A DNA stretch of 64,000 nt from Vitrella brassicaformis CCMP3155 (GCA_001179505.1 CDMY01000748.1:62001-126000); one strand, 5' to 3'. Shown: positions 36,634 to 48,499, counted from the first letter of the stretch. A program made the numbers and translations. Notes: generated by a model not told the origin, from the letters alone.

Positions 36634-36922
36634 CGCGCGGCAGAAGCGTTTACATATTTCGCGGCCGTTGCGCCGATCGCGCTCTCCTCTCTGCGTTAGC
36701 CATGCGACGACAGCCCTCCTGCTATCTGCCTGTCTCTCTGCCCTCTGTCTTAACGGCCTTCCCCCTCTCTGTCCATCTGCAGCATCCCTCGACTCCACTC
36801 TCATCGCTTGCATCGATCTCTCATCTCGCGGCTGCCCAACTTATTCTCTTCAGCAAGCCCCTCGTCGTTGTTGCCTGCCCGCTGCTCGTCTGCGCTTCCT
36901 CCCGTCGCCCGCTCCACGACAA

Positions 36923-37554
36923 ATGAAGGCCCTCTCCCTTTCGGTGCTGGTGTGCCTGCTCGGCATCGCACTGGTCTGCGCTGATGATATGAAGCGGGCT
37001 GCTCCTGCTGATGCTCCGTCTGCGGTGGCCCGGCGTTTGAGAGGCGGGATAGCTGATGACGCCGACGAAGTGACATCCGATGGTACGCACACAGGGTGGC
37101 TGTTTGCAGCTTGTCCACACGCTGCACACAAGTACGCCTTTCCTGTGTACCTGTGTGTCTGTAGGTGGTGTGCCTGATGCTCTTGTGACGGGGCCAGCGG
37201 CAGCAGACAGTGAGGACGCGGCTGATGAGCCGACGGCTGCAGCTACAGGTGGGTGTGCAGACATCCCCACCCTGCCCACACGTCATCCTTGCAATTTTGG
37301 CCACGTGTGTGTGTGTGTGGATTTGTGCGTGAACAGATGAAGATGAAGATGAGCCCAGTGGCCTGGAGGCCGTGGAGGAGTCATCGAGTCCCACAGAGCG
37401 GAGGCTGGGCCCGGGCTTCTGGGACAAGCTCAAGTATTACAAGAACAAGATCAAGAACAAGATCAAGCAGAAGTGGTATGGCTACAAGAACAAAAAGTAT
37501 GGCGGCGGTGGGTACGGCGGTGGCTACGGTGGTGGGTACGGCGGATACTATTAG
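36923..37554 (+). CDS. Secreted 153-aa prepro-protein: signal peptide, two RRL motifs, acidic spacer, cationic Lys/Tyr/Gly-rich C-terminal peptide (copy A)
   Basis: Exons 36923-37082, 37165-37248 and 37337-37554 splice in frame. MKALSLSVLVCLLGIALVCA...ARRLRGG...TERRLGPGFWDKLKYYKNKIKNKIKQKWYGYKNKKYGGGGYGGGYGGGYGGYY*. Confidence 0.88.
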
Positions 37555-38339
37555 ACACACCACAACACACATAGTGTGGGTGGGTGGGTGCGTTGACACA
37601 CACACAGTATGGCGTGTACATATCTCTGTCGATGGCTGTGTATATAAGTCACTATGTAAGTCGCTCGTGCGCTTTGTTCAAGCACGAGCACCGTACGTGT
37701 AGAGCTATGGATGACATCCAGTGGGGGGGCGGGTGGCTAGTGTGTGTTTGCCTCAAGGAACCGGATGGTCCATCCCATCCACGTGTCGGTTGTGTGCACA
37801 CACATGTACATATCTGGTCGTTCTTGGTTAGTGAGACAAGGGGTTCAGTACCGTACCCAAAGCGAGAGAGGGTGTGGTGTGGCTGATCCTGGCAGTATGT
37901 TCTGTCTGTCTAAGTGCCTGTCTGTGTGGCTGCTGCTCTGCCAGATGTGATCGATATCGATGCGCAAAAGTCTTTTGACCGGGATTCTCTGGTCCGACGC
38001 ATACATATACCGCACTCCCTCTGTGAGTGATCGGCGTCTTCTTGTGAGCTCTCAAATACGTGTATATGTGTGTGTGGGTGGGTGGGTGCATGTTGATACA
38101 TGTTGATATAGACCTTGGACAACACGCGATAGGGCGGTACAATAGATAGTGAGGACGCCTTCGCATCCAGATGTGATGAGATGAGCTACACAGAATGATC
38201 GCGCCGCACTCTACCTACCTCCATCATGGCTACTCATTTAGTCATCAGTCGTTGCGGTCCGTCCATCCATCCGTCCATCCGTCCATCCGTCCATCCCTTC
38301 CCTCGTCATATCACAATCACACACATCGACTCCCCCGTC

Positions 38340-38600
38340 TGATATGTGTCAGTCAGTCAGTCTGTCAGCTGTACACACGGAGAGGTCAGTCATTGCAGCC
38401 ACATAGCAGCCAAGGCCAGAACACGACACACCCACACACACCACTCCCACACACCTGCGGACGGGCAGCATCGCCCTTTGCCACGGCCAAAGACAATAGG
38501 ACCGTCAGACAGGCTCGCTCACAGAATGGCCACCAGCCTATACTCGAGGTATCTCTTGTCTGTCCCACCCGAAACAACGAAATCCATTCACTTTGTTCTC
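38340..38600 (-). pseudogene. Relic of the FKBP-like terminal exon plus its 3' flank (left arm)
   Basis: Reads ...RVGQTR / YLEYRLVAIL*. The following ~190 bp match 52840-53040 at nucleotide level. Confidence 0.6.
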
Positions 38601-38933
38601 TGCCGTATCTGTCGACGCTTGTGTCTTCCAGTCAGAGCAAGTCACACTTATGGTCTTCTTGCCTGGTGCACGCCTTCGCATCCAGACTCGATGTATCTAT
38701 GGTCGCCTGCACCACACGCACCACTGGCAGCCAGTCCTCGGCCCCCTGTGCACCGACCAAACTGCCGAAAGAATCAGTGAGTACTTTGACCGAACTGTTT
38801 GTTGACAGCTTTGACACTCATTGAGTGAACAGGTGGCGCAGATAACAGTCAGTGTCATGACAGCAGATGGTGACGGTCAGTGTCTCGCACTTATCATCAG
38901 TACGGCACACGGCACTCACCAGTCAACAATCGG

Positions 38934-41900
38934 TCAGACTGTCTCACCTAAGGCCTCAATCCACGTCCTGGATGCCATGGTCTCTATCCTCGCCACAAAC
39001 CGCTCAAACAGCTCCTTGAGCACTATGCGCCGCACCGGCTTCTCGATGAACGACGTGTCGAACAGAGAACTCGCATCGGGGTGAGACAAAATCACGTTCT
39101 GCAGAAAAAGGGATACACAGCAGAGGCTGCCCATCTTTGGCCCCCGTGTGTGGTGAGCAAAGAGCACATGGCCGTCTCACCTCTTTGCTCTGCGCAGTGC
39201 ACCTGTGTCCATTAACAACACGAGTGTGTGTGTCTCTCTGTGTGTGTGTGGTTTGCTCACAGGGCCATGAAGATGGGCGGCGCGCGTCTTGTCCGTTCCA
39301 TGTCGTGGAGCATCTTCCGAATGCTCCTCGCCGCCGCCACTCCGTCGCTCTCCGGCATCTCCAAATCCGTCAGCAGGAATATCGGCCTGAACGAAACACA
39401 CCAAACGCACTTGCAAGCGAGCAATCACATGTCTCTCTGTGTGGAGCCCTGGCGGACGCGTCGCTTTGGTTGAGCCTGTCTTTGACGGCGTTGACGAGCT
39501 CGACGCCGTTCAAGGCCCAGGTCATGCTCTCCTCGGGCCAGCCCATCTTTGTGATCATCAGCTCGAGCGACTGCCGGTTGATGAAGTCGTCGTCGGCCAG
39601 CACTATGTGGATCTTGAGGCGCTGCATCTTTTCCATAAGCTCTTTGAGTGCGGTGGCGTCGATGGTCTGCCGCAAGGGACTCCTGTCGCCCCTCCTGCCG
39701 ACGTTGAGCTCAAACACGCCCCAGCACTGGAAGCGGAGAATGGCTGTCGTGCCTTTGTCGATGCCCTCGGACTCCAGCCGGCAGTCGCCTCCCATCGCCA
39801 TGGCCACCATCCGCGCGATGGAGAGGCCAAGGCCAGTGCCGATAAGGGCATCCTTGGCTTGCACTTGCTGCGTTACAGAGCAATGGGCAGATTGACGTCG
39901 GCAGAGACAGACGCTCAGACCCTTTCCAAGTGGCTTGCTGACCTCAAATTCTTTGAAGATGCTTTGCAGCTTATCGTCAGGGATGCCCCGGCCGCTGTCT
40001 GCACAGACATCCGACAGATAAAGAAGAAGAGCTTACCAAGCCCAGCAAAGCTTCCACCGACCTTTGACCCTGATCTCGATGGCGTATTTCTTCATCGACT
40101 CGACATCACACGACGGATGCTTAGCCAGGTCAAAGGCGGGCGGCTCGCCGTCCTGACGACGGAGGGACAGACAGTAATTACACATGGGGGCCTCCAATTG
40201 ACATTACCTGGTCCGCTGCCAGCTCAGAAGTGACGGACACTTCAACAGACCCTACAGGCAGACAGACAGAGACACGAGGCACAAGGCAGGATCCACCCAC
40301 GGGAAAGCTTCGCCGCTGTCCATGGTGACCTTTCTCGGTCATCTTGACGGCATTCGACAGCAGGTTATTTGCCGCTTGTGAAATACGGACGCTGTCGCCA
40401 TAGATGAAGTAGGGCAGGTGAGACAGCGAGGGGACCTCATACGTCAGCTTCTTGAGTCTCGTGGTCGGGATGTGCAGGTGGAAGACCTTCTTCAGCGCTG
40501 CCCGGCAGTCCATCCAGTCGAGATGCAGGTCGAACACATCGCTAAGGGTCGTCACGTTCCTTCGTTCGTCGTCCTGCGAGGCCGCGTAGAGAAGTCTTGA
40601 TGCTGTCTTTTTTACTCCCTCCCAGCTGCAGCAGGTGGGCGTGACGTCGAGAGAGGACGATGGACGCCGCAAAGCGCCTCGGTCGATGCGGTCGATGCGG
40701 TCGAGGCTGAACTTGCGCTCCCGCTTCAGGGTCAGGCGAGATACCTCGAGGAGATTATTGGTCAGCAGCAGCATGTACTCGCCGGCGCTGCTCATTATGT
40801 CCACATAGCCGTAGACTGCAGTACGAATGCGGGGGGGATAGGCGTAGAAGCATGCAGTCACTTGTTCGAGAAATGACAGGCGTACTTGGGTGTTCTGAGT
40901 TTATTTTGAGGTTCTGGTCGAGGTCATTCCTCATGAAGTCTGCCGCGTTAATGACGCCATTCAGGGGGGTCCTGAGGTCATGTGTAATTTTCGCGAAAGT
41001 CGCATGCTGGGCCGCCAGGAACCTGTCCTTTTCTTCCGTCATCTTTTGGATTCGGTGTTTGTCTCGTATCACTTCTCGACAATTTCTCTCCATGGTGATG
41101 CTCACCCACACCAGCAAGAGCGCCGTCACTGGAGAGATACCAACGAAAGACCAAGAGAGATAACGTCGCATGCTGGTTGCGAGCCGTGTACTGCTTGTCA
41201 GCCAACCTACATCCAGGTGGGAACACCCTACGGCATCGTGCATGTGGGCAGCCACAGACAGATAGATACCCATGTGGGGACAGGAGCATAGGGCCTAGGC
41301 GTATGACATACCATACGTACCTGCTGAACATTCCTTCCCGATCGACGATAGCTTCAGCTACAATTAACCTGTCGGTGTGCAAACAAGACAGAAGGCGACT
41401 TATTGTCGTGCATTGCCGTATAGCTTGTGATACCAGGAAAACATCGACAGGCACACACACCTACAGGCAAAGAACCAAAAGCCAAAGAAGACAGGCCGTC
41501 CATTAAATCGATGTACAATACAGCGAGACACATACCCAGCGAGGAAGCTGTTCGCTTTGAACACTGCGAATGATGACACATCAGGGAGATTGCTCAACGA
41601 AGCCATGATGCGAGAACATGTGTGTGTCTCTACCTGTCCAGTAGGCCACCATGCCCAGTGCATAGCCGAAATCAGCCCCAGGTATTTCTTTGCACCGCGC
41701 TTCAGCGGGCAGGATTTCCAGCAGGGTACTGCGGCTGAAACGGTATCGCGAGTGGAAGGCGTTGAGGCATCCAACAGCACAGAAACAGATCGTCATGATG
41801 CGCAAGTCGATGAGACGGGAAGCGTGTGTCTTGTTGGGCCAAATCGCTCGGACGGTTAAGAAGGCTCCGAGAAGGCCCACAACCACACTGCATGACAACA

Positions 41901-42744: not shown

Positions 42745-45700
42745 ATGGAGCCGAAAGCAGGAGAGGCGAAAACAGAGGTGACGGTCCCGGAGGTGACTGT
42801 CCCTGTGGCAGCGGATGAAGAGGATGTGACAGACCGACTGATGAAGAGCGCCTCTGCGCACTGGGCCGATATAGATTGCCATCCTGTTTGGAGCAGAATG
42901 CCCTGGTATCTGTTATCACCTCTCGAGAGAGAATCAGCGGCGTGACAGCGCGTTGATGTGTGTGTGTGGCAGCTTGAAAGTCGAGTTCATTGATCCGAAG
43001 CTGGAGGTGGCCTTCCAGAAATGGGTGTATTCTGATCTGGTCCGATGGATCAAGGTAGCAGACTTTCTCTCTCTGGTGTTGCGATGTACGTTTCTGTATG
43101 TGTGTGGCAGGTCCCCTTGTTGGTTTTTGCGTTCGGCCTTGTGTCGCACATTGCCACGGAGACCGAAAGACTAGTTCGACACGGTGACTTTCTATTCTCA
43201 CGGATGCTTCGAGATGCGTAAGGCAAAACTATTCGCGCATATATCCGGCCGTATAGGCGTCCGTGCGCATGTAGGGTGATCGTCTCATTGCTTGGAAGCT
43301 TCTTAGCTGTCCGAGCGATTTGGCCCAACAAGACCCATGCGTCGCGTCTCATCGACTTGCGCATTATGACGATCTGTTTCTGTGTCATTGGAAGCCTCAA
43401 CGCCTTCCATTCGCGATACCGTTTCAGCAAGAGAACCTTGGTGGAAATCCTGCCCGCTGAGGCGCGATGCACTTCGATGCCGGCTGCTGATTTGGCGTAC
43501 TCCCTGGGCATGGTGGCCTACTGGACAGGTAGATACACACACACATCTTCTCGCATCATGGCTTCGTTGAGCAATCTCCCCGATGTGTGATTATTCACAG
43601 TGTTCAAGGCGAACAGCTTCCTCGCTGGGTACGTGTCTCGCTGTATTGTTCATCGATTTGATGGACGGCCTGTCTTCTTTGGCTTTTGGTTCTTTGCCTG
43701 TAGGTGTGTGTGCCTGTCGATGTTTTCCTGGTCTGTTATGCATTCACGGCTGCGTGCAGCGTGCTGACACAGGTGATCCTTTTCCCTGCTTTTAGGTTCC
43801 TCTTAGCTGACTCACTGGAGTATGGGTCAGACATGCTAGGCAGGTAGGCACGACCATCTCATTAACCCGCGTGGCCGACTACACACTGTTCTCTATCTGT
43901 CCCTTCTCTTCCACATGTGCGTGCTGCCGTATGATGTAGAATAACCCCAACTGGATGTAGGCTTACACGTATTGTCAATCGTCTGCAACTCATCTCACTT
44001 CAGCTTCTTTGTGTGTTTCTAGTAACGGCGCTGTTGCTGGTGTGGGTGAGCATCAACATGGAAAGGAAGACTCGGGAAGTAATCCGGGACCGCTCGCGTC
44101 TGCAAAAAATGACGGAGGAGAAAAACCGGTTCCTGGCGGCCCAGCATGCGACGTTCGCGAAAATTACACATGATCTCAGGACCCCCCTGAATGGCGTCAT
44201 CAACGCGGCAGACTTCATGAGGAATGACCTCGACCAGAACCTCAAAATAAACTCAGAACACCCAAGTACGAATGAATGTCATTTCACGAGCAAGTGACTG
44301 CATGCTCCTACGCCTATCCCCCCCGCATTCGTACTGCAGTCTACGGCTATGTGGACATAATGAGCAGCGCCGGCGAGTACATGCTACTGCTGACCAACAA
44401 CCTCCTGGAGGTGTCTCGCCTGACCCTCAAACGGGAGCGTAAGTACAGCCTCGATCGCATCGACCGCGGCGCTTTGCGGCGTCCATCGTCCTCTCTCGAC
44501 GTCACGCCCACCTGCTGCAGCTGGGGGCGAGTCAAAAAGACTGCCTCGATGCTCCTGTATACGGCCTCGCAAGACGACGAGCGAAGAAACGTGACGACCC
44601 TTAGCGATGTGTTCGACCTGCATCTCGACTGGATGGACTGCCGGGCAGCGCTGAAGAAGGTCTTCCACCTGCACATCCCGACAACGAGACTCAAGAAGCT
44701 GACGTATGAGGTCCCTTCGCTGTCACATTTGCCCTACTTCATCTATGGCGACAGCGTCCGCACTTCACAGGCGGCGAACAATTTGCTGTCGAATGCCGTC
44801 AAGATGACCGAGAAAGGTCACCATAGACAGCAGAAGCTTTCCCGTGGGTGGATCCTGCCTTGTGTCTCGTGTCCCTGTCCGTCTGCCTGTAGGGTCTGTT
44901 GAAGTGTCCGTCACTTCTGAGCTGGCAGCGGACCAGGTAATGACGCATCAGAGGCCCCCATGTGTAATTATTGTGTGTTTGTCCGTCGTCAGGAGGGCGA
45001 GCCGCCTGACCTTGACCTGGCGAAGCATCCGTCGTGTGATGTCGAGTCGATGAAGAAATACGCCATCGAGATCAGGGTCAAAGGTCGGTGAAAACCTTTG
45101 CTCGGCTTGGTAAAGTCTTCTGCCTTACCTGTCGGATGTCTGTGCAGACAGCGGCCGGGGAATCCCCGACGATAAGCTGCAAAGCATCTTCAAAGAATTT
45201 GAGGTCAGCAAGCCACTTGGAAAAGGTCAGAGCGTGTGTGTCTGCCGATGCCAATCTGCCCATTGCTCTGTAACGCAGCAAGTGCAAGCCAAGGATGCCC
45301 TGATCGGTACTGGCCTTGGCCTCTCCATCGCGCGAATAGTGGCCATGGCGATGGGAGGCGACTGCCGGCTGGAGTCCGAGGGCATCGACAAAGGCACGAC
45401 AGCCATTCTCCGCTTCCAGTGCTGGGGCGTGTTTGAGCTCAACGTCGGCAGGAGGGGCGACAGGAGTCCCTTGCGGCAGACCATCGACGACACCGCACTC
45501 AAAGAGCTTATGGAAAAGATGCAGCGCCTCAAGATCCACATAGTGCTGGCCGACGACGACTTCATCAACCGGCAGTCGCTCGAGCTGATGATCACAAAGA
45601 TGGGTTGGCCCGAGGAGAGCATGACCTGGGCCTTGAACGGCGTCGAGCTCGTCAACGCCGTCAAAGACAGGCTCAACCAAAGCGACGCGTACACGATGGC

Positions 45701-46220
45701 TCCACACAGAGATACATGTCATTGTTCGCTTGCAAGTGCATGGTGTGTGTTTCGTTCAGGCCGATATTCCTGCTGACGGATTTGGAGATGCCGGAGAGCG
45801 ACGGCGTGGCGGCGGCGAGGAGCATTCGGAAGATGCTCCACGACATGGAACGGACAAGACGCGCGCCGCCCATCTTCATGGCCCTGTGAGCAAACCATAC
45901 ACACAGAGACAGAGAGACAATCACACACACACGTGTTCTTTATGTGCACAGGTGCACTGCGCAGAGCAAAGAGGTGAGACGGCCATGTGCTGCTTGCTCA
46001 GCAGCCAAGGGGGCCAAAGATGGGCAGCCTCTGCTGTGTATCCGTTTCGCTGCAGAACGTGATTTTGTCTCACCCTGATGCGAATTCTCTCTTCGACACG
46101 TCCTTCATCGAGAAGCCGGTGCGGCGCATAGTGCTCAAGGAGCTGTTTGAGCGGTTTGTGGCGAGGATAGAGACCATGGCATCCAGGACGTGGATTGAGG
46201 CCTTAGGTGAGACAGTCTGA
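42745..46220 (+). CDS. Membrane-bound hybrid histidine kinase (TM sensor-HisKA-HATPase_c-REC), copy B
   Basis: Same motifs: HDLRTPLN (~44170), NLLSNAVK, DSGRGIP..IFKEF, GTGLGLS, ADDD, DLEMP, CTA, EKP. Head-to-head with copy A. Confidence 0.93.
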
Positions 46221-46569
46221 CCGATTACTGACTGGTGAGTGCCGTGTGCCGTACTGATGATAAGTCCGAGACACTGACTGTCACCATCTGCTGTCATGAG
46301 ACTGACTGCACTTATCTGCGCCATCTGTTCACTCAATGGGTGTCAAAGCTGTCAACAAACAGTTCGGTCAAAGTACTCACTGATTCTTTCGGGAGTTTGG
46401 TCGGTGCACAGGGGGCCGAGGACTGGCTGCCAGTGGTGCGTGTGGTGCAGGCGACTGTAGATACATCGAGTCTGGATGCGAAGGCGTGCACCAGGCAGGA
46501 AGACCATAAGTGTGACTTGCTGTGACTGGAAGACACAAGCGTCGACAGATACGGCAGAGAAGAAAGTGA

Positions 46570-46820
46570 ATGGATTTCGTTGTTTCGGGTGGGACAGACA
46601 AGAGATACCTCGAGTATAGGCTGGTGGACATCTTTTGAGCGATTGAGTCTGTCTGACGGTCCTATTGTCTTTGGCCGTGGCAAAGGGCGATGCTGCCCGT
46701 CCGCAGGTGTGGCTGTGGGGTGTGTGTGTGTGTGTGTGGTGTTCTGGCCTTGGCTGGTATGTGGCTGCAATGACTGACCTCTCCGTGTGTAAAGCTGACT
46801 GACTGACTGACTGACACATA
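46570..46820 (+). pseudogene. Relic of the FKBP-like terminal exon plus its 3' flank (right arm)
   Basis: Reads YLEYRLVDIF*, followed by the same ~190-bp flank seen at 52840-53040. Confidence 0.55.
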
Positions 46821-47617
46821 TCAGGCGGGGGAGTCGATGTGTGTGATTGTGATATGAGGAAGGAAGGGATGGAGGGACGGACGGACCGCAACGACTGATG
46901 ACTGAATGGGGAGTTATGATGACTAAATGAGTAGCCATGATGGACAGGTAGAGTGCGGCGCGATCATTCTGTGTAGCTCATCTCATCACATCTGGATGCG
47001 AAGGCGTCCTCACTATCTATTGTACCGCCCTATCGCGTGTTGTCCAAGGTCTATATCAACATGTATCAACATGCACCCACACACATATACACGTACTAAG
47101 CAGCTCACACGAGGACGCCGATCACTCACAGAGAGAGCGCGGTGTTGCATCATCGGAGGAGAGAATCGCGGTCAAAAGACTTTTGCACGGGCAGCATCGA
47201 TATCGATCACATCTGGCAGAGCAGCAGCCAGACGGCCAGGCACTTAGAGAGACAGGACATACTGCCAGAATCAGCCACACCACACCCTATCGCTTTGTGT
47301 ACTCACTTAGTGCTCACCATCTCACTTACAAAGAACGACCACCTAGGTGCATATGTGTGTGCACAATCGGAACCTGGATGGGATGGACCATCCGATTCCT
47401 TGAGGCAAACACACACTAGCCACCCGCCCCCCCATTGGATGTCATCAATAGCTCCACACGTACGGTGCTCGTACTTAAAACACAAAGACGCACGAGCGAC
47501 TTACATAGTGACTTACATACACAGCCATCAACAGAGATATGTACACGCTATACTATATGTGTGTGTCATCGCACGCACCCACACACACCCACACACACTA
47601 TGTGTGTTGTGGTGTGT

Positions 47618-48225
47618 CTAATAGTACCCGCCGTAACCACCACCGTAGCCTCCGCCATAGCCACCGCCACCATACTTTTTGTTCTTGTAGCCATACCACT
47701 TCTGCTTGATCTTGTTCTTGTAATACTTGAGCTTGTCCCAGAAGCCCGGGCCCAGCCTCCGCTCTGTGGGACTCGATGACTCCTCCACAGCCTCCAGGCC
47801 ACTGGGCTCATCTTCATCTTCATCTGCACACACACACACACACACGTGGCCAACACAAGGATGACGTGTGGGCGGGGTGGGGATGTCGTCTGCACACCCA
47901 CCTGTAGGTGCAGCCGTCGGCTCATCAGCCGCGTCCTCACAGTCTGCTGCCGCCGGCCCCGTCACAAGGGCATCAGACACACCACCTACAGGCACACAGG
48001 TACACAGGAAAGGCGTACTTGTGCAGCGTTTGGACGAGCTGCAAACAGCCATCGTGTGTGTGTACCATCGGATGTCACTTCGTCGGCGTCATCAGGTGCC
48101 CCGCCTCTCAGACGCCGGGCCACCGCAGACGGCGCATCAGCAGGAGCAGCTGGCTTCATATCATCAGCGCAGACCAGTGCGATGCCGAGCAGGCACACCA
48201 GCACCGAAAGGGAGAGGGCCTTCAT
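47618..48225 (-). CDS. Secreted RRL prepro-protein with cationic Lys/Tyr/Gly-rich peptide (copy B)
   Basis: Mirror of 36923-37554 with the same three exons. It lacks one KNKI repeat. Both RRL motifs and the GGGY tail are retained. Confidence 0.88.
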
Positions 48226-48499
48226 CGGTCGTGAGGTGGACGACGGGTGGAAGCACAGACGAGCAGCGGGCAGACGAACAACGACGAGGGGCTTGCTGAA
48301 CACGATAAGCTGAGGAGAGAGAGAGACTCGGAGTCAAGCGATGAGAGTGGAGTCGAGGGATGCTGCAGATGGACAGAGAAGGGGGAGGCCGTTAAGACAG
48401 AGGGCAGAGAGACAGGCAGATAGCAGGAGGGCTGTCGTCGCACGGCTAACGCAGAGAGTGGAGAGCGCGCGATCCGTAGCGCCGAAATTTGTAAACGCT

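Follow-up and report, generated by a model that had tools for sequence, protein, structure and literature searches.

The gene at positions 36923-37554 (plus strand) of the window encodes a small precursor protein of an orphan family with 12 members in the genome of Vitrella brassicaformis. The window is the whole stretch of DNA analyzed, 64,000 nucleotides of strain CCMP3155 (G000:C748:62001-126000; genome 72.7 Mb, 1064 contigs, ~57% GC). Judged from its sequences, the family appears to belong to a known class, that of secreted propeptides with predicted processing at R-x-L sites. Our best explanation is that its members are precursors of processed, defence-type cationic peptides, a reading to which we give a probability of roughly 0.45.

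Gene structure and expression

The gene consists of three exons, begins with an ATG at 36923 and ends with a TAG at 37552-37554. It is real, spliced and expressed. Its parts and the second family gene in the window are as follows.

36700-36922, plus strand: 5' UTR / upstream block kept among paralogues, covered by RNA-like contigs of runs X4 and X7
36923-37082, plus strand: exon 1, with the predicted signal peptide (36923-36982), a 16-residue linker, site 1 and the start of the spacer
37083-37164, plus strand: intron 1 (GT..AG, phase 1), joint present in X4 and X1, no coverage in X4, X7 and X1
37165-37248, plus strand: exon 2, acidic Ala/Pro-rich spacer
37249-37336 or 37249-37342, plus strand: intron 2 (GT..AG), 94-nt skip in X4, X7 and X1, in contigs with mismatches
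37343-37407, plus strand: pro part of exon 3, ending in site 2
37408-37497, plus strand: N-terminal part of the predicted mature peptide, a cationic Lys/Trp/Tyr-rich helix
37498-37554, plus strand: C-terminal part of the predicted mature peptide, a (GGGY)n tail with a YY end, then TAG
37555-37900, plus strand: 3' UTR peculiar to the window copy, with mismatch-free contigs of X4, X7 and X1
47618-48225, minus strand: paralogue L003, same layout, in the mirrored arm of an inverted duplication

Contigs from four public runs were placed on 36700-37900, and X4, X7 and X1 come from three different studies. X3 covers both introns and thus behaves as DNA, whereas X4, X7 and X1 show no coverage in either intron bin. 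In these RNA-like runs, GT..AG joints were found at 37082/37165 and 37248/37343. For intron 2 there are two candidate acceptor AGs (37335-6 or 37341-2), which lie 6 nt apart and are both in frame; a start of exon 3 at 37337 gives a protein of 153 aa and a start at 37343 one of 151 aa, the difference being a Glu-Asp pair in the spacer. The contigs that carry the intron-2 joint have mismatches and may originate in paralogues, and the annotated paralogues use the AG corresponding to 37336. The block at 36700-36922 is 86-90% identical in six paralogues and 72-74% in L004 and L005. The 3' UTR of the window copy is at most 84% identical to that of any paralogue, and because mismatch-free RNA-like contigs span this distinctive region, the window copy itself must be expressed. 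The expression presumed in the preliminary description of this DNA is thereby borne out.

A further skip, of 66 nt at 37696-37763 in the 3' UTR, occurs in contigs from each of the four runs, X3 included, and lacks splice-site ends. It is an indel variant or a difference between paralogues, not an intron.

The region around the gene forms an inverted segmental duplication (36700-41900 / 43250-48300) with 81-95% identity in 12 collinear blocks and its centre at ~42.6 kb. In each arm, a single peptide-precursor gene is accompanied by a single gene for a hybrid histidine kinase. The kinase at 39370-41780 (minus strand), mirrored at ~43300-45800 (plus strand), has HisKA-like, HATPase-like and receiver-like stretches in open reading frames; apart from the mirrored gene, the genome has no close copy of it, and weaker relatives are found on C1028, C182 and C321. 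A cassette of peptide and histidine kinase as a feature of the family was considered and rejected, the kinase being co-duplicated only in the inverted repeat of the window and absent near the other family genes.

The precursor and its predicted peptide

By heuristic criteria, the precursor starts with a signal-peptide-like leader of 20 residues, comprising an N-terminal MK, a 16-residue hydrophobic core and a V-C-A end followed by DD. The mean Kyte-Doolittle value of the core is ~2.65 (calculated on the identical leader of a paralogue) and ranges from 2.2 to 3.0 across the members. Site 1 reads A-RRL-RGG, with the RRL encoded at 37031-37039; RRLR occupies residues 37-40, 17 residues past the predicted end of the signal peptide. 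A spacer of 64 aa with 19 Asp/Glu against 3 Arg follows, and site 2 reads E-RRL, with the RRL at 37399-37407. The remainder (37408-37551) is a predicted peptide of 48 aa with 11 Lys, 1 Asp, 10 Tyr, 2 Trp and 15 Gly and a net charge of +10. This length presumes a cut straight after the Leu of site 2, one of three possible cut positions. In composition, the peptide is 23% Lys, 21% Tyr and 31% Gly; it ends in YY and has no Ser clusters. The preliminary description had proposed this same layout, from the signal peptide through ARRL, acidic spacer and ERRL to the basic peptide; its counts are all right, and the leader is consistent with the secretory start that it had assumed.

AlphaFold2, run on an alignment of nine exon-3 units, predicts that residues 23-51 of the exon-3 piece form a helix (core pLDDT 77-84) and that both the acidic part and the Gly/Tyr tail are disordered, the latter with pLDDT <50. 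The helix of subfamily A is very hydrophilic, with a mean Eisenberg hydrophobicity of -0.41. The maximum hydrophobic moment of the window-copy peptide is 0.46, a value matched by 8.8% of shuffled sequences (p ~0.09). Significant moments were obtained for four of the nine A units, and amphipathicity is absent in some paralogues.

An orphan family of twelve genes

A genome search with exon 3 and exon 1 revealed a family of 12 genes, eight of which belong to the type of the window copy (subfamily A) and four to a second type (subfamily B). Five of the subfamily A genes are on C748, and the others are on C738, C582 and C366. The peptide of L003 has 44 aa, with one K-N-K-I unit fewer, and the gene at C748:31204-31994 contains two consecutive units of spacer, RRL and peptide in its last exon. 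The subfamily B genes form two tandem pairs.

G000:C342:49885-52558 and G000:C338:108799-111484: subfamily B genes L019-L022

The leader is 84-100% identical in eight paralogues and 57-60% identical in subfamily B, and the heptad ARRLRGG is invariant. The two subfamilies have only the signal peptide, ARRLRGG and the acidic spacer in common; the last exon of subfamily B encodes unrelated cationic peptides, which lack the Gly/Tyr tail and each have a C-terminal Cys pair. The hydrophobic moments of the subfamily B peptides are 0.47-0.70, with shuffle fractions of 0.004-0.049. As a general leader motif of Vitrella, ARRLRGG was rejected, since the genome gave 25 pattern matches against 29 for the control. 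It is family-specific because the signal-peptide context occurs only in the 12 family genes.

A relative of the B type was found on a metagenome contig of ENA (L074; ERZ893782, 2849 bp) and in the Logan assembly of ERR3274946. The gene on L074 has the same leader but differs in its mature peptide and reads DRRSL at site 2, so the samples behind ERZ893782 and ERR3274946 contain a relative or a strain of Vitrella.

The sequence searches used exon references or stored paralogue proteins, not the joined three-exon protein of the window copy. With this scope, a profile of eight members retrieved nothing beyond the family from 1.84 billion protein representatives, and word searches of protein sets gave matches only from Vitrella or MMETSP. 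Pfam searches with exon pieces and eight full-length members detected no family above threshold, a sequence search of the PDB with both mature peptides gave no match, and a search for look-alikes in the ESM Atlas gave no usable match. Paralogues are represented among the public Vitrella gene models and by an MMETSP transcript. Of the five genes on C748, four (the window copy, L002, L003 and L006) are missing from the public protein collections searched and are probably unannotated. The layout is more than a chance pattern in one reading frame, because eight paralogues keep it, four more genes share the leader, and public models and a transcript exist. In the literature searched, we found no description of the family, in agreement with the preliminary description, though UniRef automatically names several members 'RxLR effector protein'.

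The MMETSP transcript, P0001, has a leader like that of L002, an exon 2 like that of L005 and a mature part like that of L007. It reflects either a strain difference or a chimeric assembly of near-identical paralogues.

Conservation pattern

The mean pairwise nucleotide identity of the eight subfamily A genes differs strongly from segment to segment.

Exon 1: 0.916
Exon 2: 0.918
65 nt through the end of site 2 (the pro part of exon 3): 0.965, the highest of all segments
Introns: 0.81 and 0.84
Mature part: 0.785, gaps at 37% of positions

From these values we conclude that the pre-pro part is constrained and that the peptide changes no more slowly than the introns. A conserved pre-pro part combined with a fast mature part is a signature seen in gene families for secreted defence peptides and toxins. 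Repeat slippage contributes to the indels of the mature part, and in low-complexity repeats it can produce indels without selection. The Gly/Tyr tail is present in eight of the nine subfamily A units, and its length varies among paralogues.

The charges of the spacer and the mature part are opposite and scale together: spacers of -16 to -20 go with peptides of +8 to +12, and spacers of -3 to -7 with peptides of +4 to +7. The preliminary description had cited it as established that acidic pro-pieces mask cationic antimicrobial peptides. The charge relation holds across the two subfamilies and suggests such masking here.

Processing sites and candidate proteases

The RRL of site 1 is present in all 13 genes. 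At site 2, which was compared in 14 units, strict RRL is found in 12, whereas R-x-L and RR are each found in all 14. Conservation of RRL in homologues, on which the preliminary description relied, is thus observed, with two variants at site 2. The sequence SSPTERRLG is invariant in the nine A units, and site 2 of subfamily B reads RRRL (three times), RRGL (once) or RRSL (once). Within subfamily A, however, conservation of RRL is not independent evidence of a protease site, because the whole surrounding block of 22 residues is conserved. Every site also fits R-x-L-x (RRLR, RRLG, RRLL, RRLI, RGLQ, RSLL), and the Leu is at a fixed distance in all 27 sites. Because all sites fit each of them, an aspartyl-type cut after Leu, a dibasic cut and a cut of the site-1-protease type are indistinguishable by sequence.

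The genome encodes a clear predicted orthologue of plasmepsin V/ASP5. Its gene is located at G000:C688:131100-134591 (L062); an open frame of 388 aa (L062:1468-2631, minus strand) has plasmepsin V structures as its best PDB matches (4zl4 and 8tyf, E = 4e-39, next best 3e-7), contains a Cys-rich insert and both catalytic motifs (DTGS and DSG), and is followed by a downstream exon with a hydrophobic, TM-like stretch. Another aspartyl protease candidate, on C266 (L055), was rejected as being of the pepsin/cathepsin type instead. The preliminary description had taken RRL as a signature of ASP5 cleavage. The presence of a PMV/ASP5-type protease in the genome supports this assignment, whereas RRL is not unique to ASP5, since the silaffin, RXLR, dibasic and site-1-protease patterns fit as well.

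An alternative to the aspartyl protease would be a subtilase, acting on the same layout and releasing the same products, either by a dibasic cut after RR or by a site-1-protease-type cut one residue past Leu. RR is as invariant as R-x-L (14 of 14 at site 2) and all sites fit R-x-L-x, so a dibasic-specific or another subtilase is compatible with the sites; furthermore, the genome has more than 20 generic S8 subtilase loci. That Tyr-rich wall proteins of coccidia are processed by subtilisin is established. The B variants RRGL and RRSL also break the strict RRL needed by Toxoplasma ASP5 (PMC6212819). Against a subtilase, the Leu that is invariant at a fixed distance in 27 sites would be needless for a purely dibasic enzyme, and the genome contains the clear PMV/ASP5 orthologue described above. 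Moreover, neither the P-domain of kexin/furin nor any of three site-1-protease-specific Pfam domains was found in an exon-wise genome search, in which controls matched nowhere or hardly at all; these absences count only lightly, because the exon-by-exon searches had no positive control. Taking both sides together, we regard cutting by a subtilase as possible but somewhat doubtful.

Function of the released peptide

For the reading as a processed defence peptide we propose the following pathway. Guided by its predicted signal peptide, the prepropeptide would enter the ER and be cut in the secretory pathway at the two conserved R-R-L sites, one 17-19 residues past the signal peptide and the other directly before the basic part, most likely by the encoded membrane aspartyl protease of the plasmepsin V/ASP5 type. 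The match of charges suggests that the acidic spacer would neutralise the basic peptide until release. The product of the window copy would be a 48-residue peptide of net charge +10, composed of a Lys-rich helix with Trp, Tyr, Ile and Leu and a floppy Gly/Tyr tail. Once secreted, it would bind anionic surfaces, and its most probable role would be to defend the alga against, or help it compete with, bacteria and other microbes of its biofilm habitat. The family would diversify the peptide through duplication, indels and doubling of units.

We favour defence or competition because both subfamilies share a cationic, helix-prone peptide that is predicted to be secreted and charge-masked. However, the hydrophilic helix and marginal amphipathicity of the window copy would suit polyanion binding, and with it a structural role, in addition to membrane attack, and its Lys/Tyr/Gly composition would also fit a polycation that binds minerals or serves in a wall or an adhesive. 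If the defence reading is true, these would be the first gene-encoded cationic defence peptides in a chromerid, and a family of such peptides would be added to the microalgae, where few are known.

A structural role ranks second for function. In this alternative, the released peptide would be a structural or adhesive polycation of the laminated cell or sporangium wall or of an adhesive, whose Lys residues bind anionic polymers and whose Tyr residues form dityrosine or DOPA cross-links. The Lys-, Tyr- and Gly-rich composition with its YY end, the very low hydrophobicity and the retention of the Gly/Tyr tail in nearly all subfamily A units agree with it, and parallels exist in diatom silaffins and cingulins, coccidian Tyr-rich wall peptides, plant Gly-rich wall proteins and marine cements rich in Lys, Tyr and Gly. 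The precursor architecture is the same as that of diatom Sil1p and Sin1 (PMC4557024, PMC5525289). Subfamily B, on the other hand, uses the same precursor without a Tyr/Gly tail and resembles soluble amphipathic peptides; a fast-evolving mature part would be unusual for a building block, and the profile and Pfam searches revealed no sequence relation to any wall protein family. Nor is Vitrella known to silicify. On balance, we consider a structural polycation unlikely. The wall cross-linker suggested by the preliminary description is accordingly weakened as a common role of the family, although the composition of the window peptide still fits it.

It is also conceivable that the precursor is never cleaved and is secreted whole as a disordered block-polyampholyte, for example a self-coacervating one, with RRL serving in sorting or binding. 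Cleavage is so far a prediction, the acidic part and the Gly/Tyr tail are modelled as disordered, and the conserved 22-residue block at site 2 exceeds what a protease site needs. In contrast, spacer and site are duplicated along with the peptide in the two-unit gene, and experiments have shown that R-x-L is cleaved in Toxoplasma, Plasmodium, oomycetes and diatoms (PMC6212819, PMC11754927, PMC4557024). Taken together, these points make an uncleaved precursor quite improbable.

Finally, the signalling peptide of the preliminary description, here a pheromone or density cue sensed by the adjoining hybrid histidine kinase, found no support and is highly improbable: small processed peptides commonly act as signals and the kinase gene lies tail-to-tail only 2-4 kb off and was co-duplicated with the peptide gene, but of the twelve family genes only these two have kinase relatives beside them, the other kinase-like matches (C1028, C182 and C321) sit on contigs without family genes, and a ligand that has to keep fitting a receptor would not typically combine a net charge of +10 with low complexity and fast turnover of indels.

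Comparison with known systems

In animals, the prepropeptides of amphibian skin peptides and those of the defensin/cathelicidin type combine a conserved signal and acidic propiece with a basic processing site, a hypervariable cationic peptide and a balance of charges. The Vitrella precursors have the same pre-pro/mature pattern and the same charge balance, and subfamily B even has a C-terminal Cys-loop. However, the lineages are unrelated, the site is R-R-L rather than K-R, and lytic peptides are typically much less hydrophilic than the window peptide.

The NLP and CNC (caenacin) peptides of nematodes are infection-induced, Gly/Tyr-rich secreted putative antimicrobial peptides whose in vivo role is argued (PMC2453101). 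Secretion, Gly/Tyr richness and organization as clustered, recently expanded and diversifying families are shared with Vitrella (PMC2453101). There is no homology, and the Gly/Tyr repeat of Vitrella occurs only as a tail behind a Lys-rich helix. The Tyr-rich wall proteins GAM56/82 of coccidia recall the 21% Tyr of the window peptide, yet neither the profile search nor Pfam revealed relatives.

In architecture, the silaffin precursor of diatoms is the closest known system. Precursors of this type have a signal peptide, an early RXL (often RRL), an acidic domain and Lys-rich basic peptides bounded by RRIL/RRNL, which are removed in maturation by a protease that is unknown (PMC4557024, PMC5525289); in Sin1, the RRL is located 30 residues past the signal peptide (PMC4557024, PMC5525289). 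The signal peptide, an RXL ~20-30 residues further on, the acidic domain and Lys-rich peptides bounded by RR-x-L are thus common to Vitrella and to Sil1p of Cylindrotheca, Sin1 and the cingulins. In contrast to the silaffins, which are associated with biosilica and carry polyamine-modified Lys and phosphorylated Ser, the Vitrella peptides are not Ser-rich or prone to phosphorylation and consist of a Trp/Tyr helix and a Gly/Tyr tail, there are one or two units per precursor instead of seven, and the host, an alveolate, is not known to produce silica. The two groups lack homology, and the profile search of 1.84 billion representatives found no relation to silaffins or cingulins.

Oomycete RXLR proteins are cut between L and R before secretion, and only if the motif is part of the disordered segment that follows the signal peptide (PMC11754927). 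Site 1 of Vitrella (R-R-L-R) is likewise within ~40 residues of the signal peptide, in a disordered stretch and followed by acidic residues. The automatic name 'RxLR effector protein' in UniRef probably arose because site 1 fits RXLR in sequence and place. Nevertheless, the Vitrella proteins have no EER, no WY-type domain and no Pfam match, the organism is free-living, and the pay-load is a cationic peptide of 30-60 residues. No oomycete protein was retrieved in the family profile search.

The ASP5 of Toxoplasma cleaves behind RRL, accepts different P1' residues and acts at N- or C-proximal positions. A substrate may be cut at several sites, GRA44 having an additional RRL whose use is unproven, and a change of RRL to ARL blocks cutting by ASP5 (PMC6212819). 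Vitrella has a signal peptide (by heuristic), a conserved RRL and a protease of clade D (PMV/ASP5) in its genome, with cleavage as a prediction. It differs in that the known substrates of TEXEL and PEXEL processing are dense-granule proteins of the host-parasite interface rather than small peptide precursors, and in that two relatives have RRGL or RRSL. Unlike the PEXEL of Plasmodium (RxLxE/Q/D), the Vitrella sites (RRL-R-G, RRL-G-P, RRL-G-K, RRL-L-G, RRL-I-I) do not have the P2' residue.

Research on ASP5 and plasmepsin V treats them as gatekeepers of the export of parasite effectors and as drug targets. With a bearing on their role before parasitism, the family described here offers a compact set of candidate substrates in a culturable, free-living relative of the apicomplexans, with two short conserved motifs, a protein of 150 residues and an easily detected product. 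As a speculative extension, which we hold to be doubtful, cutting at R-x-L by the plasmepsin V/ASP5 lineage may originally have been a general propeptide-convertase activity of free-living algae that matured small secreted peptides, in Vitrella lineage-specific cationic defence peptides, and PEXEL/TEXEL, perhaps along with diatom RXL and oomycete RXLR, may be later uses of it. The shared precursor architecture links three R-x-L systems that have been studied separately, those of apicomplexans, oomycetes and diatoms.
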